From contig NIVC01002033.1 in assembly GCA_002269645.1 (NCBI GenBank), forward strand, positions 1 to 64,000: DNA of 64,000 nucleotides, in the 5' to 3' direction. The position numbers and the translations under genes were made by a program. Below are positions 1 to 58,074 of this stretch, piece by piece. Within the stretch, counting starts at the first letter, position 1; each line of letters opens with the position of its first letter. The notes beneath the pieces are model-generated. The model had not been told where the DNA came from. It worked only from the letters and a program-made list of their open reading frames with translations, and ran no database searches. This DNA comes from Macrostomum lignano (Eukaryota).

Positions 1-890
1 GTGCCAATTTAAGCTTGTTGCGACTATACGGCCTGATAGAAGTCCGTAACATGCTTCATTTTGCTGTTTGCAATCGTCGAGCACAATTTCGTTCTTGAAC
101 AAAGCATTTCGCGCATTTTTCAGGCAGTGAGGGATATCAATGATGACAAAAACAGGCTCGTTTGTCACTGGGTGGTGCAGAAACGGCTTGGAAGAGCTTG
201 GTAGCTCCACTGGCTTGTCTCTTGGTCTGCAACCAAAGCTACAACGATAATTCCTGCATGATGACACGCCGTCAGACAACTTTCAATCGCGTTACGAAAA
301 CCTTCCTGTCCGAGACTCCGATGCGCAGGGTAATATGCAATCGATTGCTTCCAGTTGTGCAAAATACCGCGAACTACGCCTGCTACCGCTTCGTCTACAA
401 CTTTTGGTGCATCCGCTTGAGCAGGATCAGTCTCAAAGCCAATTATCTTGTCCTTGTACTGGCTGTAACGCACACATCCTGACAAGCTCATTCCATCAAA
501 GCAAAGAGTGGCCACTCGCTCTTTCTCTGTGCAGTCTTGCAACTTTTTTCTCATCAGCTTCATGGTAACTTCACAAACGCCTTCTTCCTGAAAAAACAAT
601 CTGATGCGCCGCTTAATTGACGTCTCTGATGGAAATGGCATCTTCCACTGATCTCGCAGAAGTCGGTACGCGGCAGGACTTTTGTGATGCACTTGAATAG
701 CAGAGCAGATGTCTTCGACAGCCCAATGCATGCCACGGTGGCGAGACTTTGTTTGCTTCATAGAGCTCTGCACTAGACGGTGGAGGGCGCTGCTGCTGCT
801 GCTGCTGAACTTTCCAACCTGCGAGTCTTCGATTTTGCGCCGCAGCTTATCGATCGTCTTCTCCTGCCGACACAGCTTTCGTCGCTGTGT
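1..890 (-). mobile_element. Degenerate P-element/THAP9-type transposase fragment, runs off the window start
   Basis: ORF 165-773 has P-transposase features (KSPAAYRLLR..KMPFPSETSIKR, TLCFDGMSL, GVVRGILHNWKQSIAY, VVALVADQ). The frame extends upstream to a tttag acceptor at 890. Downstream, frameshifted pieces give PFLHHPVTNEPVFVIIDIP/CLKNARNAL, the D-x-P-H-x-x-K-N-x-R-N motif. Confidence 0.8.
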
Positions 891-2411: not shown

Positions 2412-5029
2412 ATGGCTCATTATGTCGCTGGAAGCTCAGATAATGTTCAGCAGGAGACGATTCTGCTTGAGCAGTTTAAACAGCAGATTGTTACTCACCT
2501 GCTGATTACCCTCGAAGTCCACAGTCGGATGGAGTGCGGGACTATCAAGACAATGACACGGATGAAGAGGACTGCGATGCGACAGTTGAATCAGCCAGAC
2601 GCTTTGCTCAAACTGATGACAATCTGCGCAGGTGATCTACTCAGCTATCTACTCATCTAAGTGCTGACGTACTCAGCTATCTACTCATCTAGATACTGAC
2701 ATACTCAGCTATCTACTCATCTAGATACTGACATACTCAGCTATCTACTCATCTAGCTACTAATCTAGCTGCTCATCTACTCATCTAAGTGCTGACGTAC
2801 TCAGCTATCTACTCATCTAGATGCTGACATACTCAGCTATCTACTTATCTAGCTACTAGCTGCTCATCTACTCATATATTTTTTATTACAGTAGGGGCTG
2901 TGTGCACCCTGGGCGCACTTTAAGCGACACTGCCACACAACCCATTCCGCCGACTCCCCTGAGCAGGCACACAAGCGCACGGATACGTACGCAGTCATAC
3001 GCACAGGCACACACTCACACAGGAGTGTACAGCGGCCCTAACTTTATTTATCGTTAGGCATGTACACTTCACTGTGCCTTGGGGGTTGGTCCTCAAGGCC
3101 GTTAATTGCACGAGCAGAGCCAAGCCGGGATTCCAATTTAGCCCCACATCTGAGCCGCTGGCACATTAGAGTGCCGCACTAGACTAGGATTCGGCCCCCC
3201 TTACTCATCTGTCTAGTCGTCTGTTTACATAGCTGCAGTACAAACAAATCTAACAGATGGCTAGTCGCCCGCAACTGGGACCTGGATTCGGCGGTCGCAA
3301 TGTACAATACCGCTGCCGACTTCCGTCTGCGTCATCGGCCGGAACGGCTGCTCACTCCGCAGGCTGAGCAGCGCCTGCCGGAGGTCCTTCGCCGCCATCT
3401 GTCCGGCGGTTTTGTCGGCTTCGATCGCTCGGGTCGGCCAGTTCGAGTCGAACTATTCGGCGCCCTGGATCTGCCCGGACTATTGCGCGCCAGTCGATGG
3501 CGCCATCTGCGCCGAGCCAAACTGCGCGAGTGCGAATTGGCGCTGCGCCTTTGCCGGCGCCAGACCCGGCGCCTTGGCCGGCCGGTGATCGGTATGACAG
3601 TGATTTTCGACATGGCTGGTGCTACGGCGCGTTTTCTATGGCCGCCGGGAGTGACCGCCTACCTGCGGCTGGTCCGAATGCTGGAGGATAATTATCCCGA
3701 ACTTGTCAGCCAGCTGCTGGTGGTCAATAGTCCCACAGTAGGCAAACCTCGATTTGGGAATGATTAGTCACAGATATGTTTGAATTGGATCTAGTCAGAT
3801 TGGTGACTAGATTAGTCAGATTGGTGACTAGATTAGTCAGATTAGTGACTAGATTAGTCAGATTGGTGACTAGATTAGTCAGATTGGTGACTAGATTAGT
3901 CAGATTAGTGACTAGATTAGTCAGATTAGTGACTAGATTAGTCAGATTGGTGATTAGATTAGTCAGATTGGTGACTAGATTAGTCAGATTGGTGACTAGA
4001 TTAGTCAGATTGGTGACTAGATTAGTCAGATTAGTGACTAGATTAGTCAGATTGGTGACTAGATTAGTCAGATTAGTGACTAGATTAGTCAGATTGGTGA
4101 CTAGATTAGTCAGATTGGTGACTAGACTAGTCAGATTGGTGACTAGACTAGTCAGATTGGTGACTAGATTTGTTAGGTTGGTGACTAGATTAGTCAGATT
4201 GGTGACTAGATTAGTCAGATTGGTGACTAGATTAGTCAGATTAGTGACTAGATTAGTCAGATTAGTGACTAGATTAGTCAGATTAGTGACTAGATTAGTC
4301 AGATTGGTGATTAGATTAGTCAGATTGGTGACTAGATTAGTCAGATTGGTGACTAGATTAGTCAGATTGGTGACTAGATTAGTCAGATTGGTGACTAGAT
4401 TAGTCAGATTGGTGACTAGATTAGTCAGATTAGTGACTAGATTAGTCAGATTGGTGACTAGATTAGTCAGATTGGTGACTAGATTAGTCAGATTAGTGAC
4501 TAGATTAGTCAGATTAGTGACTAGATTAGTCAGATTGGTGACTAGATTAGTCAGATTGGTGACTAGATTAGTCAGATTAGTGACTAGATTAGTCAGATTG
4601 GTGATTAGATTAGTCAGATTGGTGACTAGATTAGTCAGATTGGTGACTAGACTAGTCAGATTGGTGATTAGATTTGTTAGGTTGGTTCCTACACTAGTGA
4701 TATCGGTTGGACTGCATCAATAAAATATGAACTCCCAATCCGCACAGGTGTTTCCGTTACTGTACCGCCTTTGCCAGCCGTTGCTATCCACAGCTATGCG
4801 CAACAAAATCCACGTGCTCAGCAGCGACCCGCGGCAGGCTACGATGGAGCTACTGGATCGAGTCGCGTCCGACCAGCTGCCCGCTTATTTAGGCGGCGAA
4901 TTGCGAGATGAAAACGGCGATCCGCGTTGTTCGTCGAAAATCTGTCAGGGAGGACGCGTGGCGGCTGGTTACTATGGCAACGAGAGCGCCGACGGTGCTA
5001 GCGGCAGCGGAGACAGCGATATTGATTGA
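2412..5029 (+). CDS. SEC14-like (SEC14L2/3 family) CRAL-TRIO lipid-binding protein. Exons about 2412-2631 (one frameshift), 3257-3737, 4748-5029
   Basis: Splicing gives TDDNLR-R-WLVARNWDLDSAVAMY (CRAL-TRIO N motif), then GFDRSGRPV, VIFDMAG, LEDNYPE..LLVVNSP-T/VFPLLY..PLLS..RNKIHVL, DQLPAYLGG. GT-AG sites are in phase. No GOLD domain seen before the stop. Confidence 0.85.
2640..2875. repeat. Intronic minisatellite, 32-bp unit (actcagctatctactcatctagatactgacat)
   Basis: Direct tandem copies with a 32-nt period in SEC14-like intron 1. Confidence 0.85.
2885..3045 (-). repeat. Interspersed repeat, SINE/LINE-3prime-like, related to 34666-34835
   Basis: The reverse complement shares agggccgctgtacac-cctgtgtgag, tgcgtac, cgcttgt, ggaatggg and cagggtgc..cagccc with the second copy, and is followed by an A-rich tail. 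Confidence 0.55.
3785..4680. repeat. Intronic minisatellite, 21-bp unit (ctagattagtcagattggtga)
   Basis: About 40 tandem units; source of the spurious (RLVTRLV)n ORF. Confidence 0.97.
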
Positions 5030-5673
5030 TTGAGTCGTTTTTAGTTGCTAGAGGGTTAAGTGTATCGTTCTGCTTGAGAGTTAGTGAGTTCATTGTTTGC
5101 AGCTTGTTTGCAGACTTGCGTTTCGGTCCCCATGAAGAGAATTACACGGCAAATATCACAGGCAAATTTTAATGCACTGGCCCGAAACGAATGACGTCGT
5201 GCACGGAATCAAAGCTTGGGTACTTTGTTGGAAAAGTCGTCGCCACCAGCTCGTTTTAATCTTGAAGGTGGCTCTCAGCGTGAAACGCATCAACAAGGAC
5301 TACTCAAACTACTCCTAGGTGCTCAAGGGAGTTTGTCAGAGCTTCCCTGTGTTTCAGCGTTATGCTGCTTGACGGTGTCGACCACTGCCTGACGCAATGC
5401 CACATCGAATTTAGGCTTAAAAAAATGAGTTACAATAATCAATTATCTGCAAACAAGCCCAAGTGATTGATGAAATTAAAATTGTTTAAATTAAAAGAAG
5501 CTTAATTTCTGATGAGATGTAAAACAAAACGTTCAAGCGATGTTATATTTAGTTAAACTGATCAGTCTGGAGTCAGAAGTTCAGAGTCCGGTCGTCTGTG
5601 AGTTGTCGTCAGTGCCAGCGAGTCTCAAGCTCCGATGAAGTGAGCTGGATGTCAGGTGTGGCTGCGGTAGCAT

Positions 5674-5868
5674 TTAACCAAGCCTAATCCTAGCCCTGAC
5701 CCTGACAAACTTCTTGGCGTTGTCGACGGCCTCCTCCGACATGCTGGACTCGTCCACGTTGGACAGAGCCTCCAGAACGGCCATGGCCTCAGCCTTCTCC
5801 TCCTGGGTGGGCACGGCGACAGCCAGGGCTGCGCACAGCAAAAGTCCGAGAGCGAGTTGCCACTTCAT
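5674..5868 (-). CDS. Secreted prepropeptide copy 1 (64 aa): signal peptide, acidic propiece, KK, FVRVRARIRL-G
   Basis: Intact ATG-TAA single-exon ORF with a hydrophobic signal (MKWQLALGLLLCAALAVA), a Glu/Asp-rich spacer, a dibasic site and a terminal Gly. The near-identical paralog keeps the frame. Confidence 0.8.
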   Translation of the reverse strand: MKWQLALGLLLCAALAVAVPTQEEKAEAMAVLEALSNVDESSMSEEAVDNAKKFVRVRARIRLG

Positions 5869-6529
5869 GATTGCTTGAGTAGGATCGATTCGAGTGTTTG
5901 AGCTGAGTCGAGTCTGAGCTTGTTATCTTGAGCAGTCGGCAGATGCGAATTTATGCACATCGGATTGGCACGTGTTTCCGGTCGGAGCGGCGACGTTGGT
6001 TGAGTTGAAAGCCTTCATGTGAGCAGGGCGGAGCAGATACTGCATGGCTTGCTTGTCTGTGAAGATTAGACAGCATTGTTTGCTTCATGACAGCTCAGCA
6101 ATCAAAAGTGTGTTTAACAGAGTTTTCTCAGTGCAAGTGTATGCAGCTGAACAGTCTATTTGACTCTTATGACCTTTTTATGATTTTGATTGACACTTTA
6201 TTGACTCTGAAGTGCTCATCGTTTTGGGCCATTGGCGAGAATTACACGAAAAGCCACAGTTCGGTCAGCTGCGAGCTGTCAAGTTCAGTCAGCCTCAGTC
6301 TTTGATTAAGCGACTTCGATATCAGATCTAGCCAATATAATCCCTGTTAGCCGCCTCATACGAATATATAGATTGTGTGCTTACAGGAAAGCTGTTTAAG
6401 TTATTCCCCTGACCTAGTTAGTCTTCGATTGCCAAAAACGTGTGAGCCACAGGGCTCAAAATAGAACAAGCGTAACAGTGATGAACTGCTCAACAGGAGG
6501 ATTTATTTTGTAGCTGCTTGCTACATCGC

Positions 6530-7563
6530 CAATGAAGCTGCTTGTCGCCTTCCGTTCCAACGGAAAACAGCACCGCCGACGATTGCGATCAAACCCTGGA
6601 GATAGACGTCTCGGCTGAAGAGAGCCGATGCCTTCAACCATTGGAGGCAATCGCGAAAGTCAATAAGTGGGAGGAGGACGTCCTGAAGACACGCATTCAT
6701 CGATCAGCTCGGTAAAAAAGCTTTTAACCTGCTGGCCTTACTCCCTCACAAACCACAAGACAAGACTTTCGACGAGCTGAAGGAACTTCTAAAGAATCAA
6801 AGGCGATAAAGGTCAGGACTGGTCTATCGGTACGTCTTTCACTATCTGAAGCAAGAGGATAGCGAAGACACACCTGCTGCTTACTCCAGAAGGCTTCATC
6901 AGGCGGTCGAGAGCTTCGAATTGACAGGCCTGAACGATAGGCTCCGCCACCAGTTTTTATTTGGCTTGGCCATCAAGTAGATTGTCAGAAAGCTCCTTAA
7001 GGAAAAATTGAAGGACATCACTTGGGAGAAGGTGAAGTCTGGTCAGTGCATGTGAAGCTGTCCCGTGCGGCGAAGGAGAAATGAAAGGGAGTGACGCTTT
7101 GTTAATCAATAAGACAGCCCCACAATGCAAGCTGGATGCGCGACACAAGGATCACAAAGCATTCCAGTCTCATGGGAAGTGAAATCAATGGAACTGTGGC
7201 AGGGACGGAAGAGAACGGGAAGTGGTGCCTAGTGCACCCAGACTACTACGCTGGACCTTTCAAGGGACAAGCACCTACTTTTACTCGTTGACGCCTAAAG
7301 TAAATTGGCCGAGGGACATGTTACATGCTGCGCAGTCGACTACATCGGCAGAAACCCTCCGGCAGTAAATGGGCCGATGGGCATGTTACATGCTGCGCAG
7401 TCGACTACATCCGCAGAAACACTCCGGCGCTTCTGGAGAACATTTTACTATTATGAATTCTTGGACGGCACCAAGGACTACTGGGTAGGAGTGTTAGGCG
7501 TCTCATAAAATATCTATCTCATAAATAAAGCTGCTTGTCACCTTCCGTTCATTGCAAAACTGA
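6530..7563 (+). mobile_element. Internally deleted, degenerate Gypsy-like LTR retrotransposon
   Basis: Gag-like pieces (KPQDKTFDELKELLKN; LNDRLRHQFLFGL), an integrase piece (DYYAGPF..LLVDA*SKWPE-like), and a direct repeat aagctgcttgtc(g/a)ccttccgttc at about 6535 and 7527 consistent with LTR ends. Confidence 0.6.
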
Positions 7564-8086
7564 CAATCCCCAATCTAAAAGGTCTTACTCGGGTCCAAAA
7601 CACGCTGGGAAACTTCCGGCCGCACAAAATACAGATAATGAAGCTCAGAGCCCGGGCTGTCGATGAACCGTAGAATCGTGCCTGTTCTTGCAGGTATGGC
7701 ACCATACCTCAGCGTGAAATGCGTCAACTACTCGTAGGTTCTCCAGGGAGTTAGTCAGAGCTTCCTGTGTCTTAGCGCAATACTGCTTGACGGTGTCGAC
7801 CACTGCCTTACGCAATGCCACCATTTTGCTTTCGGGAGCACTAGACTTGCCCGCGACGCATTTTTCCTGCATTGCACTTTTTCCCCAATGCTTTGTAGCC
7901 GTTGATAAAGAGATTTAGCAAATCAAAACCTTCCAGTAGTAACTATCAAGTTACAATCAATGATTATCTTCAAATAATTTCAAGTACCAGTTCACTACGC
8001 AAAGACTGGACTGGCGACTAGGCGAAATTCAAAATGTTCAATAAGACGAAGCTTAATGTTCTGCTGAGATCTTAAACAATAACCTA

Positions 8087-8470
8087 GCTCTTGATGTTAT
8101 ATTTTGTTAAACTGATCAGTCAATAATTATGCCGTCAGGAGTCAGAGTTCAGAGTGAATTCGTCAGTGCCAGCGAGTCTCAAGCTCCGATAAAGCGAGCT
8201 GGATGTCAGGTGTGGCTCTTGATGTTATATTTTGTTAAACTGATCAGTCAATAATTATGCCGTCAGGAGTCAGAGTTCAGAGTGAATTCGTCAGTGCCAG
8301 CGAGTCTCAAGCTCCGATAAAGCGAGCTGGATGTCAGGTGTGGCTCTTGATGTTATATTTTGTTAAACTGATCAGTCAATAATTATGCCGTCAGAAGTCA
8401 GAGTTCAGAGTGAATTCGTCAGTGCCAGCGAGTCTCAAGCTCCGATGAAGTGAGCTGGATGTCAGGTGTG
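8087..8470. repeat. 128-bp unit triplicated immediately 3-prime of peptide gene copy 2
   Basis: Units start at 8087, 8215 and 8343. A single diverged homologous copy lies 3-prime of gene copy 1 (about 5540-5665). Confidence 0.92.
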
Positions 8471-8483
8471 GCTGCGGTAGCAT

Positions 8484-8678
8484 TTAACCAAGCCTAACCC
8501 TGACCCTAGCCCTGACAAACTTCTTGGCGTGGTCGACGGCCTCCTCCGACATGCTGGACTCGTCCACGTTGGACAGAGCCTCCAGAACGGCCATGGCCTC
8601 AGCCTTCTCCTCCTGGGTAGGCACGGCGACAGCCAGGGCTGCGCACAGCAAAAGTCCGAGAGCGAGTTGCCACTTCAT
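8484..8678 (-). CDS. Secreted prepropeptide copy 2 (64 aa): predicted mature FVRARVRVRL-G
   Basis: Same architecture as copy 1; 7 nucleotide differences in 195 nt. Confidence 0.8.
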   Translation of the reverse strand: MKWQLALGLLLCAALAVAVPTQEEKAEAMAVLEALSNVDESSMSEEAVDHAKKFVRARVRVRLG

Positions 8679-9952
8679 GATTGCTTGAGTAGGATCGATT
8701 CGAGTGTTTGAGCTGAGTCGAGTCTGAGCTTGTTATCTTGAGCAGTCGGCAGATGCGAATTTATGCACATCGGATTGGCACGTGTTTCCGGTCGGAGCGG
8801 CGACGTTGGTTGAGTTGAAAGCCTTCATGTGAGCAGGGCGGAGCAGAGACTGCATGGCTTGCTTGTCTGTGAAGATTAGGCAGAATTGGTTTGCTCGATG
8901 ACAGCTCTGCAATCAAAAGAGTGTTTAACAGTTTCGTCAGTGCAAGTGTATGCAGCTGAATAGTCTATTTGACTCTTATGACTCTTTATGACTTTGATTG
9001 ACGTTCGCTTGCATAGTAAAGCGTAATGACAGTCTAAGTTTAGTTAAGTTTAAATGACAGTTCAGTGCAACCGAGTTGCTAAGGCACTAAGCAGGCACAT
9101 ATTTAGACTCCTTAGACACTTTACTCCTTAAGAATTGGCTTGAGAAGTACAGAGTGCAGTCTATTTGTGTTCCGTGCTGCTATAGCCTTCCGGATGCTCT
9201 GGGACGCCTTGGAGACCAATTTTCATGTACTAGCCCCAATTTAATGATGTCGAGCACGGAATTGAGTCGAGCACGGAACTGCACTTACAGTTCGAGAGTC
9301 GGACACTGAGCTACAATAAGTACAACCGAATGAGCTGCAATCGTATTGGTCTACGTTAAATAAATGTTCATGTTTATGTGGCGCAGTAGGCTTACGAATA
9401 TTCTTGGTAGCTCGTACATCTAAACCGCGGGATGTGTAGCCATGCCATTGAAATCTAGTGGCGGCTTCACTATACCGGTCATTAATATTTGTTATTTTTG
9501 AACTCTTCTCCTTTAGTTCAGTTACAAATTTTTCACTAGACAAAAACTGCACCAACTAAAAATACAATCTAATAATTACCGGGTTCGGATCCGCTGAGCT
9601 CTGTTTGAGTAAGAACACCGCTCAATTCAAATTTCGTGTTTGGATTATTAAAAAGTAAGACATAGAGAAAGCTTCTCATTTCTTCATTTAAAAGGTTATT
9701 TGCATATTAGCTGTATGTTTTTTTTAAAATATTGTATATTATTCTTTATTGTAGATGTTTACAGGTGAAGTAGTAGTTATTTGCGGCAAAAGGTACCGTT
9801 TATACCAATAACCCGCCAGGTGTAAAATAGCTTTAGATGCATTAAATTGTTTTTGTTGCCAGATCGACCGTAGTGGAACCGTATTACACATCAACGGTGA
9901 AAATGAATTGGAGAAACTGAGGCGCCCCTGTGTTGGGACATTGTGGGAATCA

Positions 9953-23851: not shown

Positions 23852-26800
23852 ATGTCTAGCAAATCTGGAACTACTAAGCGCAAGTCTGAGCGAGTGCGCA
23901 CCACCAGCACTACTGAGTCTGAGGCTTCAAGCGCTGCCGCCGCTGCCCAGAGTGAAGTCTCGGCCACGACTGTTTCTCCACAGAAGCAGGTGTCTGGTAG
24001 CACTGTTACTACTACCACTACCTCTAGTCGAAAGGTAAATTTGAAAGTATCCATTTTACTGTAGAAAGGAATTTAATACCGAATTTATTGTAATAAACAA
24101 GTCTTAATTTAAAGCTAGCACCTTAGGATACCCTGAAGCACCACTGGTCTTCTGACTACTGTACTGGATGGAGGTAACAGAATGGTCCCCTGAAGCTCCT
24201 TCCTGTGGGTATCAGGCTCCCCTGAAGCTCCTTCCTGTGGGTATCAGAACTATCAGGCTCCCCTGAAGCTCCTTCCTGTGGGTATCAGGCTCCCCTGAAG
24301 CTCCTTCCTGTGGGTATCAGGCTCCCCTGAAGCTCCTTCCTGTGGGTATCAGGCTCCCCTGAAGCTCCTTCCTGTGGGTACCAGGCTCCCCTGAAGCTCC
24401 TTCCTGTGGGTGTCAGGCTCCCCTGAAGCTCCTTCCTGTGGTTATCAGGCTCCCCTGAAGCTCCTTCCTGTGGGTATCAGGCTCCCCTGAAGCTTATTCC
24501 TGTGGGTATCAGAACTATCAGGCTCCCCTGAAGCTCCTTCCTGTGGGTATCAGGCTCCCCTGAAGCTCCTTCCTGTGGGTATTAGGCTCCCCTGAAGCTC
24601 CTTCCTGTGGGTATCAGGCTCCCCTGAAGCTCCTTCCTGTGGGTATCAGGCTCCCCTGAAGCTTCTTCCTGTGGGTATCAGGCTCCCCTGAAGCTCCTTC
24701 CTGTGGGTATCAGGCTCCCCTGAAGCTCCTTCCTGTGGGTATCAGGCTCCCCTGAAGCTCCTTCCTGTGGGTATCAGGCTCCCCTGAAGCTCCTTCCTGT
24801 GGGTACCAGGCTCCCCTGAAGCTCCTTCCTGTGGTTATCAGGCTCCCCTGAAGCTCCTTCCTGTGGTTATCAGGCTCCCCTGAAGCTCCTTCCTGTGGGT
24901 ATCAGGCTCCCCTGAAGCTTATTCCTGTGGGTATCAGAACTATCAGGCTCCCTGAAGCTCCTTCCTGTGGGTATCAGGCTCCCCTGAAGCTCCTTCCTGT
25001 GGGTATCAGGCTCCCCTGAAGCTCCTTCCTGTGGGTATCAGGCTCCCCTGAAGCTACTTCCTGTGGGTATCAGGCTCCCCTGAAGCTCCTTCCTGTGGGT
25101 ATCAGGCTCCCCTGAAGCTCCTTCCTGTGGGTATCAGGCTCCCCTGAAGCTCCTTCCTGTGGGTATCAGGCTCCCCTGAAGCTTCTTCCTGTGGGTATCA
25201 GGCTCCCCTAAAGCTCCTTCCTGTGGTTATCAGGCTCCCCTGAAGCTCCTTCCTGTGGGTATCAGGCTCCCCTGAAGCTTCTTCCTGTGGGTATCAGGCT
25301 CCCCTGAAGCTCCTTCCTGTGGGTATCAGGCTCCCCTGAAGCTCCTTCCTGTGGGTGTCAGGCTCCCCTGAAGCTCCTTCCTGTGGGTATCAGGCTCCCC
25401 TGAAGCTTCTTCCTGTGGGTGTCAGGCTCCCCTGAAGCTCCTTCCTGTGGGTGTCAGGCTCCCCTGAAGCTCCTTCCTGTGGGTATCAGGCTCCCCTGAA
25501 GCTTCTTCCTGTGGGTATCAGAACTATCAGGCTCCCCTGAAGCTCCTTCCTGTGGGTATCAGGCTCCCCTGAAGCTCCTTCCTGTGGGTATCAGGCTCCC
25601 CTGAAGCTCCTTGCTGTGGGTATCAAGCTCCCCTGAAGCTCCTTCCTGTGGGTATCAGGCTCCCCTGAAGCTCCTTCCTGTGGGTATCAGAACTATCAGG
25701 CTCCCCTGAAGCTCCTTCCTGTGGGTATCAGAACTATCAGGCTCCCCTGAAGCTCCTTCCTGTGGGTATCAGAACTATCAGGCTCCCCTGAAGCTCCTTC
25801 CTGTGGGTATCAGAACTATCAGGCTCCCCTGAAGCTCCTTCCTGTGGGTATCAGAACTATCAGGCTCCCCTGAAGCTCCTTCCTGTGGGTATCAGAACTA
25901 TCAGGCTCCCCTGAAGCTCCTTCCTGTGGGTATCAGGCTCCCCTGAAGCTCCTTCCTGTGGGTATCAGGCTCCCCTGAAGCTCCTTCCTGTGGGTATCAG
26001 GCTCCCCTGAAGCTCCTTCCTGTGGGTATCAGGCTCCCCTGAAGCTTCTTCCTGTGGGTGTCAGGCTCCCCTGAAGCTCCTTCCTGTGGGTGTCAGGCTC
26101 CCCTGAAGCTCCTTCCTGTGGGTATCAGGCTCCCCTGAAGCTCCTTCCTGTGGGTATCAGGCTCCCCTGAAGCTCCTTCCTGTGGGTATCAGGCTCCCCT
26201 GAAGCTCCTTCCTGTGGGTATCAGGCTCCCCTGAAGCTCCTTCCTGTGGGTACCAGGCTCCCCTGAAGCTCCTTCCTGTGGTTATCAGGCTCCCCTGAAG
26301 CTCCTTCCTGTGGTTATCAGGCTCCCCTGAAGCTCCTTCCTGTGGGTATCAGGCTCCCCTGAAGCTTATTCCTGTGGGTATCAGAACTATCAGGCTCCCC
26401 TGAAGCTCCTTCCTGTGGGTATCAGGCTCCCCTGAAGCTCCTTCCTGTGGGTATCAGGCTCCCCTGAAGCTCCTTCCTGTGGGTATCAGGCTCCCCTGAA
26501 GCTCCTTCCTGTGGGTATTAGGCTCCCCTGAAGCTCCTTCCTGTGGGTATCAGGCTCCCCTGAAGCTCCTTCCTGTGGGTATCAGGCTCCCCTGAAGCTC
26601 CTTCCTGTGGGTATCAGGCTCCCCTGAAGCTTCTTCCTGTGGGTATCAGGCTCTCCTAAAGCTCCTTCCTGTGGGTATCAGGCTCCCCTGAAGCTCCTTC
26701 CTGTGGGTATCAGGCTCCCCTGAAGCTTCTTCCTGTGGGTATCAGGCTCCCCTGAAGCTCCTTCCTGTGGGTATCAGGCTCCCCTGAAGCTCCTTCCTGT

Positions 26801-29800
26801 GGGTGTCAGGCTCCCCTGAAGCTCCTTCCTGTGGGTATCAGGCTCCCCTGAAGCTTCTTCCTGTGGGTGTCAGGCTCCCCTGAAGCTCCTTCCTGTGGGT
26901 GTCAGGCTCCCCTGAAGCTCCTTCCTGTGGGTATCAGGCTCCCCTGAAGCTTCTTCCTGTGGGTATCAGAACTATCAGGCTCCCCTGAAGCTCCTTCCTG
27001 TGGGTATCAGGCTCCCCTGAAGCTCCTTCCTGTGGGTATCAGGCTCCCCTGAAGCTCCTTGCTGTGGGTATCAAGCTCCCCTGAAGCTCCTTCCTGTGGG
27101 TATCAGGCTCCCCTGAAGCTCCTTCCTGTGGGTATCAGAACTATCAGGCTCCCCTGAAGCTCCTTCCTGTGGGTATCAGAACTATCAGGCTCCCCTGAAG
27201 CTCCTTCCTGTGGGTATCAGAACTATCAGGCTCCCCTGAAGCTCCTTCCTGTGGGTATCAGAACTATCAGGCTCCCCTGAAGCTCCTTCCTGTGGGTATC
27301 AGAACTATCAGGCTCCCCTGAAGCTCCTTCCTGTGGGTATCAGGCTCCCCTGAAGCTCCTTCCTGTGGGTATCAGGCTCCCCTGAAGCTCCTTCCTGTGG
27401 GTATCAGAACTATCAGGCTCCCCTGAAGCTCCTTCCTGTGGGTGTCAGAACTATCAGGCTCCCCTGAAGCTCCTTCCTGTGGGTATCAAGCTCCCCTGAA
27501 GCTCCTTCCTGTGGGTATCAGGCTCCCCTGAAGCTCCTTCCTGTGGGTATTAGGCTCCCCTGAAGCTCCTTCCTGTGGGTATCAGGCTCCCCTGAAACTC
27601 CTTCCTGTGGGTATCAGGCTCCCCTGAAGCTCCTTCCTGTGGGTATCAGGCTCCCCTGAAGCTTCTTCCTGTGGGTATCAGGCTCCCCTAAAGCTCTTTC
27701 CTGTGGGTATCAGAACTATCAGGCTCCCCCGAAGCTCCTTCCTGTGGGTATCAGGCTCCCCTGAAGCTCCTTCCTGTGGGTATCAGGCTCCCCTGAAGCT
27801 CCTTCCTGTGGGTATCAGAACTATCAGGCTCCCCTGAAGCTCCTTCCTGTGGGTATCAGAACTATCAGGCTCCCCTGAAGCTTCTTCCTGTGGGTGTCAG
27901 GCTCCCCTGAAGCTCCTTCCTGTGGGTGTCAGGCTCCCCTGAAGCTCCTTCCTGTGGGTATCAGAACTATCAGGCTCCCCTGAAGCTCCTTCCTGTGGGT
28001 ATCAGAACTATCAGGCTCCCCTGAAGCTCCTTCCTGTGGGTATCAGAACTATCAGGCTCCCCTGAAGCTCCTTCCTGTGGGTATCAGAACTATCAGGCTC
28101 CCCTGAAGCTCCTTCCTGTGGGTATCAGAACTATCAGGCTCCCCTGAAGCTCCTTCCTGTGGGTATCAGAACTATCAGGCTCCCCTGAAGCTCCTTCCTG
28201 TGGGTATCAGGCTCCCCTGAAGCTCCTTCCTGTGGGTATCAGGCTCCCCTGAAGCTCCTTCCTGTGGGTATCAGGCTCCCCTGAAGCTTCTTCCTGTGGG
28301 TATCAGGCTCCCCTGAAGCTCCTTCCTGTGGGTATCAGGCTCCCCTGAAGCTCCTTCCTGTGGGTATCAGGCTCCCCTGAAGCTCCTTCCTGTGGGTATC
28401 AGGCTCCCCTGAAGCTCCTTCCTGTGGGTGTCAGGCTCCCCTGAAGCTCCTTCCTGTGGGTATCAGGCTCCCCTGAAGCTCCTTCCTGTGGGTACCAGGC
28501 TCCCCTGAAGCTCCTTCCTGTGGGTGTCAGGCTCCCCCGAAGCTCCTTCCTGTGGGTATCAGGCTCCCCTGAAGCTCCTTCCTGTGGGTGTCATGGTCCC
28601 TTGATGACCCTGCAATAGATTCCCCTGACTACTATTTAGCTAAAATAAACAAATATCTAATGAATCAAGGACTAAAACTCCAGATGACCAAGTCTTCTCT
28701 AACTGGCGCCCCAACTGTTGGCGCCGCCTCAGGCGAGCCGTCAACCTCGGGCGGCGCCGCTGGCGCCAGGCGTCGCTCCCACAGCCCGTTAGCGATCTCT
28801 CGCGAACAAGAAAAAGAAGAATTGGCTCATTTGAACACGCAGCTGGCCTGCTACATTGAATTTGTCCGGTCGCAGCAGCAGTCTGCCGATACAGTCCGGC
28901 GTCAATATGAAACCTTGAGCGAATCGATGACTCACGAACGGGAAGAATCTAGCGGCTTATACGAACGAGAGATTAACGGCCTTCGTCATCAGTTGGATAA
29001 GCTGGCCGGAGAGAGGGCGGCGCTGCAGTTGGCCTTGGACAAAGCCAATGGAGAACGAGCCGAGGCTGACAAGTTTGTTTAGCTTTTGTTGTTGCTGTTG
29101 TTGTTTTGCTAACTGTAGTGAAAGTTTATTACGAGCTAATTTATATCCTACGAAGTATCCCTTCCAAAACTGCGAAAGTTGTTCTAGCAATGTCCAACAC
29201 TATTTTGGTTTTCGGAGTTATGATATTTCAGTTTTGTGATATTTCGGTTTTGGGTCAATGAGAATTGCCCGCCGAGGTTTGCCCGCAATGCTTTTTTTCC
29301 TGCAGCGCATTTATCCACACGGCAGATTTTGTCTGCATTGCCTCCCCAATGCTTAGTAAGTTTTAATAGAGATTTACCCGATCAAAACGTCTTGATAGTA
29401 ACTGCATATCAAATGCATATATTCTTTTGGGGGGAGGCAATGCAGACAGAATCTAGCTGCCAAATGCGTTGCAGGAAAAAAGCATTGCGGGCAAACCTCG
29501 GCGGGCAATTCGTCTGTGGGAATTTCTCGTGCTCCCTTCGGTTTTATGATACTTTTGGTTTGTGATGGGCGTTGCTAGCAAGTTCGGAGTTATTATATTT
29601 CGGGCTTGTGATGCCACCCACTCAAATGCACTTAAGACGCTACTCAGTGATTCTACAGCTACTCTAGAACGCCATAGATACTGTCTAAGACCTCTTTCGC
29701 CTAGATCACCTTCGCCGAAACCTCTTTCGCCTAGATCACCTTCGCCGAAACCTCTCGCCTAGATCACCTTCGCCGAAACCTCTTTTGCCTAGATCACCTT

Positions 29801-32800: not shown

Positions 32801-35800
32801 TAATATCTTTGCATGTATGTCAATATCAAACTTCCACTTCTTGATATAAAATCTCTCATTTTTCATATCTAATCTCACAAATGCCCAGGACGCTCGAGCC
32901 AGTCGCGACGAAATCGTTGAGCTGCGCCGCCGTCTGCACGACTCCGGCCTTGAGCTGGAGAAGGCGCGCAAAGAGGCCGACCTGTTGCGCGCTAGCAATG
33001 CTCGCTTGGAATCCGCCTTGGCCCAAGAGCGCGATGCGTTTGAGCAGCAATTAGACTACCTGCGCCAGGAGGAGAAGCGCAATAGGGAGCGCCTAGCCGA
33101 GCAGCTTGAGGAATACAATAATCTATTGACTAGCAAGCTGGCCCTGGACCAGGAGATCCTGGCCTATCGCCAGCTGCTCGACGAGGAGCAGCGTCGTACG
33201 AATTATTCGCCGCACAAGCATTCCAATCCGTCCGACGCGTCGTCTCCGTTCGCGCGCGGATCCAAGCGTAGAACCGCCGATTTTGATGACGAAGAATTGT
33301 ACTCTTCTATGGCTTATACGGTGCGTGTTATGCGTAATTCTTATTCATGCGGTATAATATACCTTTTCAACTTTGGATTCGTCAAAAGTGAGTTTATATT
33401 CGTCAGCGAATGCAAAACTATATAGCGCTCAAGGGGAAGAGAATGAGGGGTCGTACTATAAAGCTGTCGTAGCCCTGTTACTTGCGAGAGGAAGCTACAC
33501 GCGTTTCTGAAGCTCGATTTGAACCATAGACTATGCGCTTTGACTCTTCTGAGTGAGTTGATTTTTCTTCTAGTTAAAGTGTTGCGTTTTAAATGTTGCT
33601 GAGTGTAAGTTCGATCGTACGTCGGAACTTTTACACTGCAGAGATAGGAGCTAAGAATGATCTTATCTTACGATGGCTTTATAGAACGGGCCCTGAGTGT
33701 CTATGGTAAATTTTTAGAGAAAGTGACTTCGAATTCGTCACTTTAATTCGAATTCGCAGGAGCAGCAGGAAAATCTGCAACAAGCTTTTGCTGCATTTCT
33801 TTGAGGGTCACAGTCGGCTTGGCTTCTCTTCCACATACCTCGTCAACACCCCGAGCATCTCCTCAGAAAACCTTGCCTTGGTCTCACTGCACCGCCACGC
33901 GCGTTAAGATCGATCCTACCCTCATCAACATATCTCCTGATGATGTCACTGGCAGTTGTCCTCTTGATATCCTGTTCAATTGCGAGTTGTCTCCAGTCTC
34001 GTCCTTGTTGAAAACATCGCACGAGTCTAGAGCGATCCACAGACGAAATTCTCATGTAGGGCATCTCTGACAATAATCAAAGCATGAAATGAAGATTTTA
34101 AGAAATTGGACTACTTTTCCACAGACGAACTTCACTCACTTTCTTACTTAAACTTACCATAGACACCTTCTTTTCCTACCATGGACAAAGCAGACACTTT
34201 TTCTGATCAGACTGCATTTGCGCTGACGAATCTCAATTCCCATTCTAAGAATCACAATCCCCATTCTAAGAATCACAATCCCAGTTCTAAGAATCACAAT
34301 CCCAGTTCTAAGAATCACAATCCCCATTCTAAGAATCACAATCCCCGTTCTAAGAATCACAATCCCCGTTCTAAGAATCGCAATCCCCATTCTAAGAATC
34401 ACAATCCCCGTTCTAAGAATCGCAATCCCCATTCTTAGAATCACAATCCCCGTTCTAAGAATCGCAATCCCCATTCTAAGAATCACAATCTCCATTCTAA
34501 GAATCACAACCCCATATTAAATTCTCTTCATATTAAAATCATATTTCGGAGCTGCTCAGCGGTAATTTTTCGAGCCACGGCCATTTGTTCAATTCCATGC
34601 GCGACCACATTCATTTGGGGCTTGTACGTGCTCGAAGCATTGGCCGGTGGGTTCGTGCAATTCACAGCTGTAAGGGCCGCTGTACACCCTGTGTGAGCGT
34701 GTGTACGAGTGCGTGCCTGCGTACAGTATTGACACGCTTGTAAGTGCTCACGGAATGGGCAGAACTGCCGTCAGCGCTGGCTGCGGGACGATGTCATCGG
34801 AGGCGTTGTGTCAGGGTGCCCGCAGCCCTCCTACATGATTCCTATTATTAATCCATATTCATATTCCAAGAATATCCCTATCCTAACCCCCATCGTCTCC
34901 ACAACATCTCAGGTGCACCAGGAGCAGTGCGGCGCAATCCACGTGCACGAATTGGACCCGGAGCGCGGCCAATTTGTCCGATTGCGCAACACTTCGCCGG
35001 ACTCCGAAGTTGCCATCGGCGGTTGGACGCTGCGTTTAGAATGCGACGGCGTCACCAGCGCCTTCAAGTTCCCGGCTAAGACAGTTTTAGCGCCACTAGC
35101 TGAGGCTACCGTAAGTAACAGCCTGGGCATTGTTTGTTTATAACAGTCTGTTGTTTGTTGGTTATTCTCCTTACTTGACCCTACCATTAGTCTCCACCTG
35201 ATTCTGTACGGCCTCTACTTCATTCTACTATCTGACTTATTTCTATTGTTCTCCAGCCAATTTCTACCTTCATTTTCACTGACACAGGTGTGGAGCTCCG
35301 ACGCCGGCGTAGCTCATAATCCGCCAGCGGATTATGTTAGCAAAACCAAAGCCTGCGGTCAGGGCGAAAATATTCGCGTCCGATTGGTTGACGGCAGTGA
35401 TAAGGTAAAATTATTGCATAAAATTTTATTCAATATGCAAATCACCCCACTTTTAGTAAAAATTTAAGTAAAAATCCATTTTTAGGCCAAAAAAAGAATT
35501 TTTACTGAAATTTACAACTCACTAAGTATAGTAAACATATGGGTAGAAAACAACTATTGAACAGAAAACAAAAAAATTCTTCTGAAATTTGCAGCTCACT
35601 CTACTTATACAAAAAACATAAGTAGCCCTCTGGTAAATAAACCAGATAACATCACAAGATAACTTTTGCTCAAACGAGATAACATGTCCTATTACGGTTA
35701 TGTAAAATGTTATCTTGTATAAATCCCGTTTGCGTGACGAAATCTTACGTTTCCTTGTTTCAAACAAGATAAAAATAGGATTCACTGTCCAGGTAACAGT

Positions 35801-44349: not shown

Positions 44350-44840
44350 ATGAACATATTTCGCCTAATCGGTGACCTCAGCCACCTGGCTGCAATTCTT
44401 CTGCTTCTGCTGAAAATCTGGCGCAGCCGATCCGTGTCCGGAATTTCCGGCAAGTCTCAGCTGCTGTTTGCCGGCGTGTTTCTCACCCGCTATCTGGACC
44501 TGTTCTTCGTCTTCGTGTCGCTCTATAACACCGTGATGAAGCTGGTGTTTATCGCTACCAGCTGCCTCACCTGCTACCTTATTTATCGGCGCTTCCCCGC
44601 CACTCGGGATTCCAATCAGGTTGGCTTATTGGCTTGTGTTTGTGTCTGTCTGTCTGTGTGTCTGTCTGTCTGTGTGTCTGTGTGTCTGTCTGTATGTGTG
44701 TCTGTCTGTCTGTGTGTCTGTCTGTCTGTGTGTCTGTCCGTCTGTCTGTCTGTCTGTGTGTCTGTCTGTGTGTCTGTCTGTCTGTGTGTCTGTCTGTCTG
44801 TCTGTGTGTCTGTCTGTGTGTCTTTCTGTGTGCCTGTCTC

Positions 44841-44871
<31 letters not shown>

Positions 44872-44920
44872 GCCTGTCTGTGTGTCTGTCTGTCTGTCTG
44901 TCTGTGTGTGTGCCTGTCTC

Positions 44921-44963
<43 letters not shown>

Positions 44964-45006
44964 GTCTGTCTGTCTGTCTGTCTTAGTGTCTGTCTGTCTG
45001 TCTGTG

Positions 45007-45037
<31 letters not shown>

Positions 45038-45160
45038 ATTTCTGTGTGTCTGTCTGTCTGTGTGTCTGTCTGTCTGTGTGTCTGTCCGTCTGTCTGTCTG
45101 TCTGTGTGTCTGTCTGTCTGTCTGTGTGTCTGTCTGTGTGTCTTTCTGTGTGCCTGTCTC

Positions 45161-45215
<55 letters not shown>

Positions 45216-45264
45216 GCCTGTCTGTGTGTCTGTCTGTCTGTCTGTCTGTGTGTGTGCCTGTCTC

Positions 45265-45295
<31 letters not shown>

Positions 45296-45824
45296 GACAA
45301 TTTTTGTGTGCCTCCTCCGTCCCGTGCAAGCCATAGTTACACTCCCTCTTTTGTGTTTGTGCATGTATGCCTCTGACTGTCAGCCCCACAATCGTAGTTT
45401 ATTGTTTTTCTTACAATATATCTGCGCAACTGCCCCCCACCCCTGTCCGCCGCAGGACACATTCCGAGCCGAAATTCTGGTCATCGCCTCGGCCGGCCTA
45501 GCCTGCCTAATTAACCACGAGTTCAGTCCGCTAGAGCTGCTATGGACATTCAGCATCTACCTGGAATCCGTGGCCATCCTGCCGCAGCTGTTCCTCATTA
45601 GCAAAACTGGCGAAGCGGAGACCATCACCTCGCACTACCTGTTTGCCCTGGGCTCCTACAGGGCCCTGTACATTCTCAACTGGATCTATCGGCTTGTAGT
45701 TGAAGGCCAATACGACGTAATTGCCATCGCTGCTGGCTGTTTGCAGACCGCTCTGTACGCTGACTTTTTCTATCTGTACGTTACTATAGTACTCAAAGGT
45801 AGAGCGATGTCCTTACCGGCTTAA
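44350..45824 (+). CDS. KDELR: ER lumen protein-retaining (KDEL) receptor, 212 aa. Exons 44350-44619 and 45456-45824
   Basis: [37 protein letters not shown]; DTFR; [16 protein letters not shown]; [16 protein letters not shown]; YADFFYLY. Phase-0 intron. Confidence 0.97.
44640..45297. repeat. (TGTC)n/(TG)n microsatellite in the KDELR intron
   Basis: Directly visible; source of several spurious SVCL/TDRQ ORFs. Confidence 0.97.
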
Positions 45825-51500: not shown

Positions 51501-52047
51501 TGGCAAGTAAAATTCGGATTAGTAGATTTACAATGCATCGGATTCAGATTGAATCGCCCCCCATCCCCTGTAATTGCAGATCCCATCGAGAATGGACGCG
51601 TGTTAAAAAATCGATACACGGTGGCTACCGGCGGCTTCGACAATCTGGTGAAACTGTGGCACCTGGTTGCTACCGGCGAGGATTTGAGTGAGGACGAGTT
51701 TTTTTAATTTTAACACCTCGGTTTATTGATTTGTTGTGTGTGTGTTTTAATAATCATATGCAATCGTTTCATAATTTTCTCTGCTATCCATTTGCCAGGA
51801 TTTGCAGGTATATGGTTTCATTTAAAAAATTATTATTTACTTGCCTGTCTCTCCTGCTAGCTATGCTGTTTCTAGTGCTTGATTTTCTCGTAGTTTTTCC
51901 TGTTGTTTTTCGCTTTACTCCTTGAATATCTTAGTTAGAATTCTGGTGTCGTACTGTATTTTTGTAATAAGCCATCACTCAAAATGCACTGTTGCACTGC
52001 TATGGTGGTCTGGTTTCGACAGACCGCTAGACAGACAGACAGACAGC

Positions 52048-52095
<48 letters not shown>

Positions 52096-52137
52096 ACAGA
52101 CAGACAGACAGGCAGACAGGCAGACAGACAGACAGGC

Positions 52138-52170
<33 letters not shown>

Positions 52171-52173
52171 GGC

Positions 52174-52238
<65 letters not shown>

Positions 52239-56467: not shown

Positions 56468-57238
56468 TCAAGCGCTGGACTTGGCGACCAGAGCCGCTTC
56501 AATCTGCTTCTCCAGCGTGGCAGCGTCGGCGGCGAATCGGCGAATACCTTCGGCCAGTTTGTCCGTCGCCATCTCGTCTTCGTTCAGCTGCCAGCGAAAC
56601 TCGGCCTCGTTGAGTGAGCGGGCGGCGCTGTCCGGGCAGTCCTGGCTGGCCCGTTCGCTGCACAGCCGCCTGGGCACTTCGGCTGGTAGCACCCGGAGCT
56701 GCTCCAGCAGGGCTGGGCTGATGGTGAGCAGGTCGCAGCCGGCCAGCTCAAGGATTTGCATTGTATTGCGAAAGCTGGCGCCCATAATTTCAGTTTTATA
56801 GCCGAACTTTTTGTAATAATTGTACACTCCGCGAACGAACCGAACGCCCGGCTCGGATTCGCGATCGAACGAGCTGACGCCGAGCTTTTTGCCGTACCAG
56901 TCCGTGATGCGACCGACGAATGGCGAGATTAGTGTGACCTTGGCCTCGGCGCATGCGATCGCCTGGCAACCGGATTGGATTAGTGAGTATTAAATTTATC
57001 TCAGTTTTAGATTTTAACGATACTGAATGCGAGCAATAACTGACGGGGGAAGAAAAACAGACAGACAGAAATTCGGTCAGACTCATAGAGGTTAGAGGTA
57101 CATGTAGACTCTAAGACAGAAGGACAGACAGAAAGCCAGACACAGGTGCAGACAGACAGGCAGACAGACAGACGACACGGATACAGACAGACAGACAGAC
57201 ACACAGACAGACAGACAGACAGACACAGACAGCCAGCC

Positions 57239-57311
<73 letters not shown>

Positions 57312-58074
57312 CAGACAGACAGACAGACAGACAGACTGACAGACAGGCACGCAGATAGAATGACATTAACATAGTTAGACAATAGACAAAGAAATGCATA
57401 ACATGCATTAACAGACTCGATAAGACAAACAGATACACAGACTATAAAAACTTGAACCAACAGCATTTCGAGAGTTTAATTTAATGCTACTGCACATACT
57501 CGCATCCCAGCTTTAACAAACCTGCGGCATAGAAAACATCAGCGTCAGATTGCAGTGAATGCCTTCAGCTTCCAACAGCTTAGCGGCTTGAATTCCCTCC
57601 CAGGTGGAGCTCAGCTTAATGAGCACGCGCTCTTTGGCTATGCCGGCGTCTGCGTACAGCTTGATGAGGCGTCTGGCCTTGGCCACTTGAGCATCTTTGT
57701 CGAATGACAGTCTAAAATATATATTAGACATTATTTGCATTAAAATTGTTTTACTAAAAAGGCTTGTTAAATTGTTTAAATAAATAAAATATTTATTAAT
57801 GTCTAAAAATCTGATTTTTCATAGGCTGTGCCAAACTTTGCCATTTTTAAAGCATGCATAATTTACCTAGCATCAACCTCAGTAGACACGCGACCAGGAA
57901 CCACTTTGAGAATCTCTAAGCCAAATGCAACAAACAGACGGTCCATTGCTTCTTCAAGAGTGGCGCTGCTTGATACAGTAGAGTCTACCAGCTGCTTGTA
58001 CTGTGGCATCTTAGCAGCAGCCAGAATCAGTGAAGGATTGGTGGTGGCATCAGTTGGCTGGTAGGTCTTAATAG
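56468..58074 (-). CDS. TALDO1: Transaldolase, 5-prime partial. Exons 58074-57867, 57711-57522, 56962-56468; first coding exon not found
   Basis: [25 protein letters not shown], the catalytic-Lys motif [53 protein letters not shown]. Phases are consistent. Confidence 0.96.
57110..57350. repeat. (GACA)n microsatellite in a transaldolase intron
   Basis: Directly visible. Confidence 0.95.

Follow-up and report, generated by a model that had tools for sequence, protein, structure and literature searches.

What do two neighbouring and nearly identical short genes of the flatworm Macrostomum lignano encode, and does the regular pattern of their products reflect a peptide or a DNA repeat? The question arose from the first 64 kb of contig NIVC01002033.1 (assembly GCA_002269645.1), which we call the window. 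There, two open reading frames (ORFs) of 64 codons, copy A and copy B, each specified a candidate precursor with a predicted signal peptide, an acidic propiece, a Lys-Lys (KK) site, a decapeptide in which hydrophobic residues and Arg strictly alternate, and a terminal Gly. We found that the pair had many paralogues. We considered it about an even chance that the window peptides were host-defence-like, amidated, beta-amphipathic secreted effectors, a view that was read from sequence and that is weighed below against four alternatives.

The gene pair and its family

The preliminary description of this DNA had reported two intact 64-residue ORFs of this layout on the minus strand, and both lay exactly where it had put them (Table 1). 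Part by part, the precursor of copy A read MKWQLALGLLLCAALAVA, VPTQEEKAEAMAVLEALSNVDESSMSEEAVDNA, KK, FVRVRARIRL and Gly before the stop codon, and that of copy B was the same except for N50H and its tail, FVRARVRVRL. The signal peptide was inferred from MKW, a 15-residue hydrophobic core and A-V-A, which were nearly invariant across family members. The earlier count of differences also proved exact. Namely, the coding sequences (CDSs) differed at seven nucleotides: one synonymous change (P20), N50H, and five changes in the 30-nt mature segment that altered only V, A or I and left the Gly and the four Arg codons (all AGG) as they were.

The two genes were located in duplicated units. A 432-nt block inside the unit, which began ~170 nt before the ATG and reached ~70 nt beyond the stop codon, was identical except for seven nucleotides, and beyond this block the units had 54 differences in 242 columns. 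Five of the seven block differences fell within 30 of the 432 nt (binomial P = 3e-5, or 3e-3 when two dinucleotide changes each counted as one event), and this concentration in the mature segment was strongly non-random. Moreover, the pattern AGG-NNN-AGG-NNN-AGG-NNN-AGG was present in the 64 kb at the two window-gene sites only, against an expected number of 0.02, and intact paralogues of the same layout were found at 18 loci beyond the window pair in the DNA fetched for comparison (243 kb). Thus, the two-gene observation was confirmed as real and beyond chance.

A first search returned 15 protein clusters of M. lignano entries named 'hypothetical protein BOX15_Mlig...', a number that profile searches raised to 29 when clustered at 90% identity; at 50% identity there were 9. 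Every family cluster came from M. lignano except for one 929-nt contig of SRR31628392, and a profile search of 1.84 billion representative proteins produced nothing further at E <= 0.001. Among the sequences searched, the family was found only in Macrostomum-type sequence. The fetched DNA contained 21 intact ORFs, corresponding to 20 distinct loci since one locus was carried on two contigs. Some of the genes formed tandem arrays, with four genes in 10 kb (L001) and five genes in 20 kb (L002). A second tandem pair was located in inverted orientation on the contig of the window at ~168-171 kb (L006, 10001-10189 and 12747-12935). Both of its genes encoded FVRVRVRL-Gly, and they were separated by the same spacer as copies A and B, ~160 kb off. 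The 3' untranslated region (UTR), which was triplicated behind copy B, was present once in copy A and in this sister pair. The further paralogues that the preliminary description had proposed to seek in the genome were therefore plentiful, and their comparison supported its outline of a prepropeptide family with a predicted signal, an acidic propiece, KK and a terminal Gly or Gly-Lys.

In public records all members were hypothetical or uncharacterised, apart from the UniRef entry P0005 ('SERPIN domain-containing'). The C-terminus of this entry was unlike that of the paralogues, and we set the entry aside as presumably mis-spliced. Similarly, the NCBI model P0001 (BOX15_Mlig004661g1, 85 aa) was rejected as a longer isoform, being a chimera spliced across the L006 tandem copies. 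Pfam searches of the precursor gave nothing but a marginal 'Lock_Gag1-like' match to a 17-residue acidic stretch. We discarded it because it was at or below threshold and passed only in a chimeric model that contained the stretch twice. Homology of the precursor to the arminin, preprodermaseptin or defensin families was not found in the profile search of 1.84 billion representatives. In the searchable literature, outside which most subscription journals lie, neither the gene IDs nor the strings of the peptides and of the signal peptide had a match, and nothing on Macrostomum antimicrobial peptides or neuropeptides concerned this family. The preliminary description had not recognised a described family, and none matched here in sequence or in that literature.

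Transcription of the family was indicated indirectly. Public gene models of M. lignano derive from genome-guided assembly of RNA-sequencing transcripts (PMC5730564), and several family models were '5'-partial' ORFs that ran through the genomic 5'UTR. For example, P0003 started with AQTRLSSNTRIDPTQAIMKWQ, the translation of the 51 nt preceding the ATG in the window. The genes also shared a promoter module, GACCGGAAA(A/C)ACGTGC followed 20-25 nt on by a TATA-like (C/T)ATAAAT. It was found 115-135 nt upstream of the ATG in 14 of the 21 family ORFs (at the window, L001, L002, L006 and L009-L011), with a recognisable variant on L008, and was absent elsewhere in the fetched DNA. The motif held a GGAA core and an ACGTG core. 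Since even the most divergent classes had this module, it implies that they are under common regulation. The shortest annotated 5' end lay ~30 nt downstream of the TATA-like box, from which we infer the spacing expected of a TATA promoter. At the other end, a conserved element TGATCAGTTT(T/A)AC..AAATATAAC, ~110-130 nt past the stop, was likely an AAUAUA-type poly(A) signal. The genes appear to be intronless and ~400 nt in total by estimate.

All these precursors began with M(K/R)WQ(L/F)(A/V)LGLLL... and continued with an acidic propiece, and they differed widely in their C-terminal peptides, which were 6-33 aa long and ended in L, I, F, H or P. The class of (hydrophobic-Arg)n peptides, with 8 or 10 residues, included FVRVRVRL, IFRVRVRI, WLRVRARVRI and the window type. 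FVRVHVRF represented a mixed Arg/His class, and FIHIHF, GFHVHFH and FHLHLP a His-only class. The remaining classes were Arg/Trp-rich with 18-33 residues (FRIRIRWGRVARNVLRLL, WRIRFRRIRIRWRRVYRVVRTAYRIYRHLPFP), cationic and by our own reading possibly helical (WRRRRRFRWRKAIRVAGKVAKAVL), cationic with two Cys (WRIKSACKIFRRLLHLARKCYAKKG), Pro/Arg-rich (FLRVRLPRVRMPRVRLPRVRLPRLRVRFRWSKK) and Tyr-rich (AVYKPNYYKD). On the 929-nt contig (L008, from Logan SRR31628392), the CDS at 541-813 placed a 33-residue Pro/Arg-rich tail on the same prepro scaffold, and similarity to the M. lignano loci was confined to the prepro coding part (73-83% nucleotide identity) and the promoter motif. A terminal Gly or Gly-Lys is the canonical amidation signal. 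Gly before the stop was found in both window genes and most paralogues, and Gly-Lys before the stop in P0026, P0034-36 and P0040-41. The KK site was invariant in alignment A1. Thus, the expectation that homologues would keep KK and the terminal Gly held for most of them and failed for one class, which had EK in place of KK.

Table 1. Coordinates of the two genes and their surroundings in the window (positions of the forward strand)
Feature	Position	Strand	Remarks
Duplicated unit A	5539-6194		~660 nt; 93% identical to 8349-9002
Copy A 3'UTR	5530-5673	minus	Conserved element TGATCAGTTTAAC-TAAATATAAC at 5542-5564
Copy A CDS	5674-5868	minus	Intronless, 64 codons; encodes MKWQLALGLLLCAALAVAVPTQEEKAEAMAVLEALSNVDESSMSEEAVDNAKKFVRVRARIRLG*; annotated gene in GCA_002269645.1
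Copy A stop codon (TAA)	5674-5676	minus
Copy A putative amide-donor Gly	5677-5679	minus
Copy A mature segment, FVRVRARIRL	5680-5709	minus	Hexamer-repeat core TTT GTC AGG GTC AGG GCT AGG ATT AGG CTT
Copy A KK	5710-5715	minus
Copy A acidic propiece	5716-5814	minus	aa 19-51; net charge -8
Copy A signal peptide (predicted)	5815-5868	minus	aa 1-18
Copy A promoter module	5949-5983	minus	GACCGGAAACACGTGC at 5968-5983; CCAAT-containing spacer; TATA-like CATAAAT at 5949-5955, 87 nt before ATG
Spacer between copies	6195-8086		No intact long ORF; 65-bp x2 repeat at 7299-7428
128-bp unit x3 in tandem	8087-8473	minus	Complete 3'UTR of copy B, with conserved end element, triplicated
Duplicated unit B	8349-9002		93% identical to 5539-6194
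Copy B CDS	8484-8678	minus	64 codons; protein ends AVDHAKKFVRARVRVRLG*; absent from called genes of public annotation
Copy B stop codon (TAA)	8484-8486	minus
Copy B Gly	8487-8489	minus
Copy B mature segment, FVRARVRVRL	8490-8519	minus	Hexamer-repeat core TTT GTC AGG GCT AGG GTC AGG GTT AGG CTT
Copy B KK	8520-8525	minus
Copy B propiece	8526-8624	minus
Copy B signal peptide (predicted)	8625-8678	minus
Copy B promoter module	8759-8793	minus	Identical to that of copy A; motif at 8778-8793, CATAAAT at 8759-8765

Repeat units, selection and charge

The alternation of the window peptides was written in a hexamer repeat. Both repeat cores were followed by GGT TAA, and the TRF program reported a period-12 repeat at 8493-8516 in copy B. 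The units GTTAGG and GTCAGG were permuted or nearly exact copies of the telomere repeat TTAGGG, which reads Arg-Val in the frame AGG-GTT. Four of the five tail differences between the copies amounted to a swap of GTC and GCT units. The sister pair at L006 had an 8-residue form (GTC AGG GTC AGG GTT AGG CTT) that corresponded to copy B less one AGG-GCT unit, or to copy A less one unit and with one substitution. Gain, loss and shuffling of 6-nt units were a sufficient mechanism for the diversification within this pair, and changes of whole units could account for the A/B differences as readily as point mutations. Since the repeat unit keeps the reading frame, the Arg positions and the alternation automatically, the four conserved Arg of the pair were not independent evidence of selection. 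The preliminary description was right that they and the Gly were kept, and this follows from the AGG unit.

Close to the pair, a 21-bp minisatellite (3792-4686, 42.6 copies), directly following a CRAL_TRIO-domain exon (3300-3767), read (LVRLVTR)n in a 315-codon ORF on the plus strand (3776-4723). Repeats that mimic patterned peptides do occur in the M. lignano genome, and it is the family-wide evidence, rather than the pair's own pattern, that makes the case real. In distant paralogues the basic positions were encoded by CGT, CGC or AGG, or were occupied by His (CAT), and the hydrophobic positions were confined to V, I, L, A and F. The GGT and the stop were always kept in the distant paralogues compared, despite a changing preceding residue (L, I, F or H). 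The use of different Arg and His codons at the same positions, together with the kept GGT-stop, shows that the alternation was constrained at the protein level. A telomere-like repeat was therefore rejected as the full explanation, all ORFs being intact as well. Peptide lengths of 6, 8 and 10 residues differed in steps of two.

On the contig of the window, the conservation of the four copies (the window pair and the L006 pair) was highest in the prepro part. The 162-nt coding part of the signal and propiece had 0-3 differences, the 250 nt upstream 8-15, and the 150 nt downstream 18-66, and the 33-nt tail had 0-9 differences including a 6-nt indel. We also pooled nonsynonymous (dN) and synonymous (dS) divergence over nine distinct paralogues, a comparison that has few sites, ignores kinship and is confounded by repeat-unit indels. 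The dN/dS ratio was 0.30 for the signal peptide (dN 0.03, dS 0.10), 0.96 for the propiece (dN 0.20, dS 0.21) and 0.59 for the tail (dN 0.30, dS 0.51). In the tail dS was 5-fold and dN 10-fold higher than in the signal peptide, so that the tail changed fastest and the signal peptide slowest. However, the pooled ratio for the tail gave no sign of positive selection (dN/dS > 1), and the earlier proposal of a diversifying peptide, in the sense of selection, was not supported. Since the five differences of the pair amounted to a unit swap or indel, mutational repeat instability explained them as well as selection did.

The charge of the propiece followed that of the tail. Over 28 combinations, with phylogeny ignored, the propiece charge ranged from -4 to -12 and the tail charge from 0 to +14 (Spearman rho = -0.71, P = 3e-5). 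Long members were nearly balanced between propiece and tail (-11/+11, -10/+10, -9/+9, -12/+14), and the window genes had -8 and +4. The idea that an anionic propiece offsets the cationic peptide was thus upheld across the family. A prepro part that is conserved, followed by a cationic tail that is hypervariable, is the pattern on which precursors of antimicrobial peptides and toxins are built, and the preliminary description had already likened the layout to precursors of antimicrobial peptides. It had further related the strict alternation to amphipathic beta-strands, and the hydrophobic moment of the window peptides agreed with this: it was 1.39-1.45 at 180 degrees as opposed to 0.17-0.28 at 100 degrees, and 2-4% of shuffles reached the observed value. 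Since the moment was maximal at 180 degrees, a beta strand would have one hydrophobic and one guanidinium face.

Possible functions of the peptides

In planarians, PC2-dependent prohormone cleavage and amidated peptides have been shown, the latter by tandem mass spectrometry (PMC2953531). Together with what is known of prohormone processing in general, these data suggest a route for the window peptides. The precursor would enter the secretory pathway, and the acidic propiece would neutralise the cationic tail in transport. A protease of the prohormone-convertase type would then cleave after KK, and the terminal Gly would be turned into a C-terminal amide. The products would be FVRVRARIRL-NH2 and FVRARVRVRL-NH2, with a net charge of about +5 and a perfect amphipathic beta-strand pattern. 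Once released, they would act extracellularly on anionic surfaces, most likely microbial membranes. New variants would arise mainly through gain, loss and shuffling of the 6-nt units (a hydrophobic codon plus AGG), which would shift the length by two residues and leave the reading frame and the alternation intact.

We favoured host defence because of the conserved prepro part with variable cargo, the charge balance, the tandem arrays and the Arg/Trp-rich and Pro/Arg-rich tails of paralogues. Preprodermaseptin-type peptides of amphibian skin, Hydra arminins and alpha-defensins combine a conserved signal and anionic propiece with a hypervariable mature peptide. Like the family described here, whose signal is predicted, their precursors have a signal, an acidic spacer, a basic site and a cationic C-terminal peptide that is often amidated through Gly. 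Charge-balancing propieces, many tandem paralogues and a conserved prepro part beside a hypervariable mature part are likewise common to both. However, our family had no sequence homology to them and KK rather than KR. The predicted peptides of the window subfamily were 6-10 aa long and patterned as beta strands, not helical or stabilised by disulphides, and they were encoded by hexamer repeats. Peptides of the PR-39, bactenecin and indolicidin/tritrpticin types resembled in composition the paralogues P0018 (FLRVRLPRVRMPRVRLPRVRLPRLRVRFRW...) and P0034-P0036 (WRIRFRRIRIRWRR...) on the same prepro scaffold, a likeness that lacked homology and concerned these paralogues only, not the two window genes.

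The closest functional analogues of the window peptides, by analogy of pattern, would be synthetic. IRIKIRIK (IK8L) is a synthetic beta-sheet-forming octamer with broad bactericidal activity (PMC4330034). Hairpins containing VRVRVRVRV form beta-sheet fibrils, and MARG1, an Arg-containing analogue of MAX1, kills bacteria on contact (PMC12940918). IRIKIRIK-NH2 and MAX1/PEP8R (VRVRVRVRV-DPPT-RVRVRVRV-NH2) share with the window peptides a strict alternation of V/I and R/K and strands of 8-10 residues, and they have the C-terminal amide that is predicted for the window peptides. In contrast to these designs, the window peptides were gene-encoded and had an N-terminal aromatic residue and a precursor that would mask their charge.

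Several observations spoke against host defence. Convertases favour KR or RR over KK, so that cleavage at KK is an assumption. A length of ten residues is near the lower end of the range of antimicrobial peptides in nature, and the His-only members, having no Arg or Lys, would be poor antimicrobial candidates at neutral pH. In the window type the propiece over-compensated the tail. The AlphaFold2 model of the precursor was all-helical, at a confidence too low to be informative (mean predicted local distance difference test score 66, predicted template modelling score 0.26). As noted above, the tail gave no dN/dS above 1, and the clustering of the pair differences may be mutational, through repeat slippage. 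Family gene IDs were not found in the supplement text of Macrostomum papers on ageing, the genome, ploidy, the intestine and sex-limited evolution. Finally, the putative C-terminal -VRL-amide resembled that of the I/Lamide neuropeptides of flatworms.

This last point leads to an alternative that we regarded as unlikely but serious, namely that the products serve in signalling, as neuropeptides or hormones of the flatworm I/Lamide or lophotrochozoan FVRIamide type that are released from neurons or gland cells and act on a G-protein-coupled receptor. The family would then be a Macrostomum expansion of an npp-1-like gene, with an FVRL-Gly cassette lengthened by (Val-Arg) hexamer insertions. Indeed, a signal, a spacer, a dibasic site, a peptide and Gly form the standard prohormone layout, and the formula FVR-(XR)3-L describes the window peptide, as if repeat units had been inserted into FVRL-amide. 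The window peptides started with FVR and finished with -IRL-Gly or -VRL-Gly, with six residues between FVR and the final L. Some paralogues had -VRI-Gly or -VRF-Gly; in all, paralogue peptides ended in RI, RF, HI, HF, FH or LP. The flatworm npp-1 I/Lamides (AFVRLamide, GFVRIamide) and the lophotrochozoan FVRIamides had a similar FVR start and -VR(L/I)-amide end and likewise a small precursor, and npp-1 belongs to the flatworm lineage. However, known I/Lamides have 5-7 residues, are conserved across species and come from one or a few genes, whereas the Macrostomum family had a variable peptide, dozens of genes (29 clusters and tandem arrays) and long poly-cationic relatives. Its least conserved part was the peptide and its most conserved part the prepro region, the reverse of what is known of neuropeptide precursors. 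Both the C-terminal residue (L, I, F, H or P) and the length (6-33 aa) varied, and several members reached +9 to +14 with matched acidic propieces. The profile search gave no precursor homology to any annotated neuropeptide precursor, and a motif query for a canonical FVRI/L-amide precursor returned one insignificant match only. For comparison, confirmed flatworm peptides include AFVRLa, ASFVRLa, GFVRLa, GFVRIa, AVRLMRLa and GLRLMRLa (PMC2953531), and schistosome I/Lamide precursors are likewise small, with 80-115 aa (PMC4723143).

We gave a similarly low weight to a role in building or modifying extracellular material, such as mucus, rhabdite-type or adhesive/release secretions, egg shell or seminal fluid. 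Here seawater salt, polyanions, metal ions or a change of pH would screen the charge of the strictly alternating Arg- or His-containing strands, which would then assemble by themselves into beta-sheet fibrils or coacervates. The perfect 180-degree periodicity fits this role, and high gene dosage with a TATA promoter would suit a bulk secretory product. The His-only paralogues were similar to designed beta-sheet peptides that are switched by pH or Zn, as well as to catalytic amyloids of the IHIHIQI type. A His variant of MAX1 gels with ZnCl2, and an all-Arg VRVRVRVRV hairpin makes hydrogels (PMC12940918). On the other hand, the peptides were very short and highly charged and would need a counter-ion partner for assembly, the long helical or Pro-rich members fitted no common assembly motif, and no link to a gland-specific data set was found in the supplements of Macrostomum papers.

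It was very improbable that the acidic 33-residue propiece is itself the functional secreted product and the basic tail only a sorting, neutralising or disposable element. In the window subfamily the prepro part was indeed near invariant while the flanks and the tail diverged. However, across the family the propiece evolved almost neutrally, its charge followed that of the tail as would befit a servant role, and the Gly or Gly-Lys end and the alternation were maintained at the protein level. Scarcely credible was the view that the ORFs are chance or decaying frames that arose from telomere-like hexamers in a genome full of repeats and yield no peptide, because, although the tail is (NNNAGG)n, the window also holds the (LVRLVTR)n ORF and copy B is unannotated, all 21 ORFs were intact with a common start, KK, Gly and stop, Arg codons varied among paralogues, the coding prepro part was far better conserved than its flanks, the promoter was conserved and the gene models were based on transcripts.

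The rest of the window and the place of the family

Elsewhere, the window was rich in repeats and contained several other coding segments. A 32-bp minisatellite array of 4.4 kb (~130 copies, 24186-28604) directly preceded intermediate-filament/lamin-like exons (28588-29082 and 32985-33425, Pfam Filament). A KDEL-receptor gene (ER_lumen_recept, 44350-45824) had a 650-bp (TGTC)n microsatellite between its exons (44643-45296), and similar (AGAC)n/(GACA)n arrays were found at 52018-52239 and 57114-57346. The region 49375-51306 held a WD40-repeat exon, and 21-22-bp minisatellites on either side of it (32 and 38 copies) yielded long spurious ORFs in several frames. There were also two transposase remnants: a TNP-like RNase H N-terminal domain of the P-element/THAP9 type at 165-773 (minus strand) and an ORF with a hAT-family dimerisation domain at 59577-62626 (plus strand).

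The kind of system to which the pair would belong is already known: secreted cationic peptides that follow an anionic propiece and a dibasic site and are amidated. What appears to be undescribed is the family itself, the very short and strictly alternating Arg/His peptides, the change of length by repeat units and the shared promoter cassette. As a more speculative and rather improbable reading, the family may comprise natural gene-encoded, ultra-short amidated beta-strand amphiphiles of the form (hydrophobic-Arg)n or (hydrophobic-His)n, with n = 2-4. Their length would be tuned by slippage of a telomere-like hexamer. They were perhaps born when a repeat expanded within an FVRL-amide neuropeptide cassette, and their self-assembly on surfaces, triggered by salt, pH or metal, would serve contact killing or form a material. 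If this self-assembly reading were true, they would be a natural version of designed IRIKIRIK-NH2, of MAX1 or of His-based catalytic amyloids.

To our knowledge, and by the searches run here, hardly any work has characterised the gene-encoded antimicrobial or effector peptides of free-living flatworms, and we know of no flatworm other than M. lignano with routine transgenesis. The family would give this species tractable candidates for innate-immune or secretory effectors. It also exemplifies a conserved 'delivery cassette', consisting of the predicted signal, a charge-matched propiece and the promoter, that was reused for very different cargo peptides, and the gain and loss of hexamer units would be an uncomplicated mutational way to tune the length and charge of a peptide without a frameshift. 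If active, the amidated peptides of 6-10 residues would be among the shortest natural cationic peptides of the beta type, and nature would have in them a counterpart to peptides at which materials chemists arrived by independent design.

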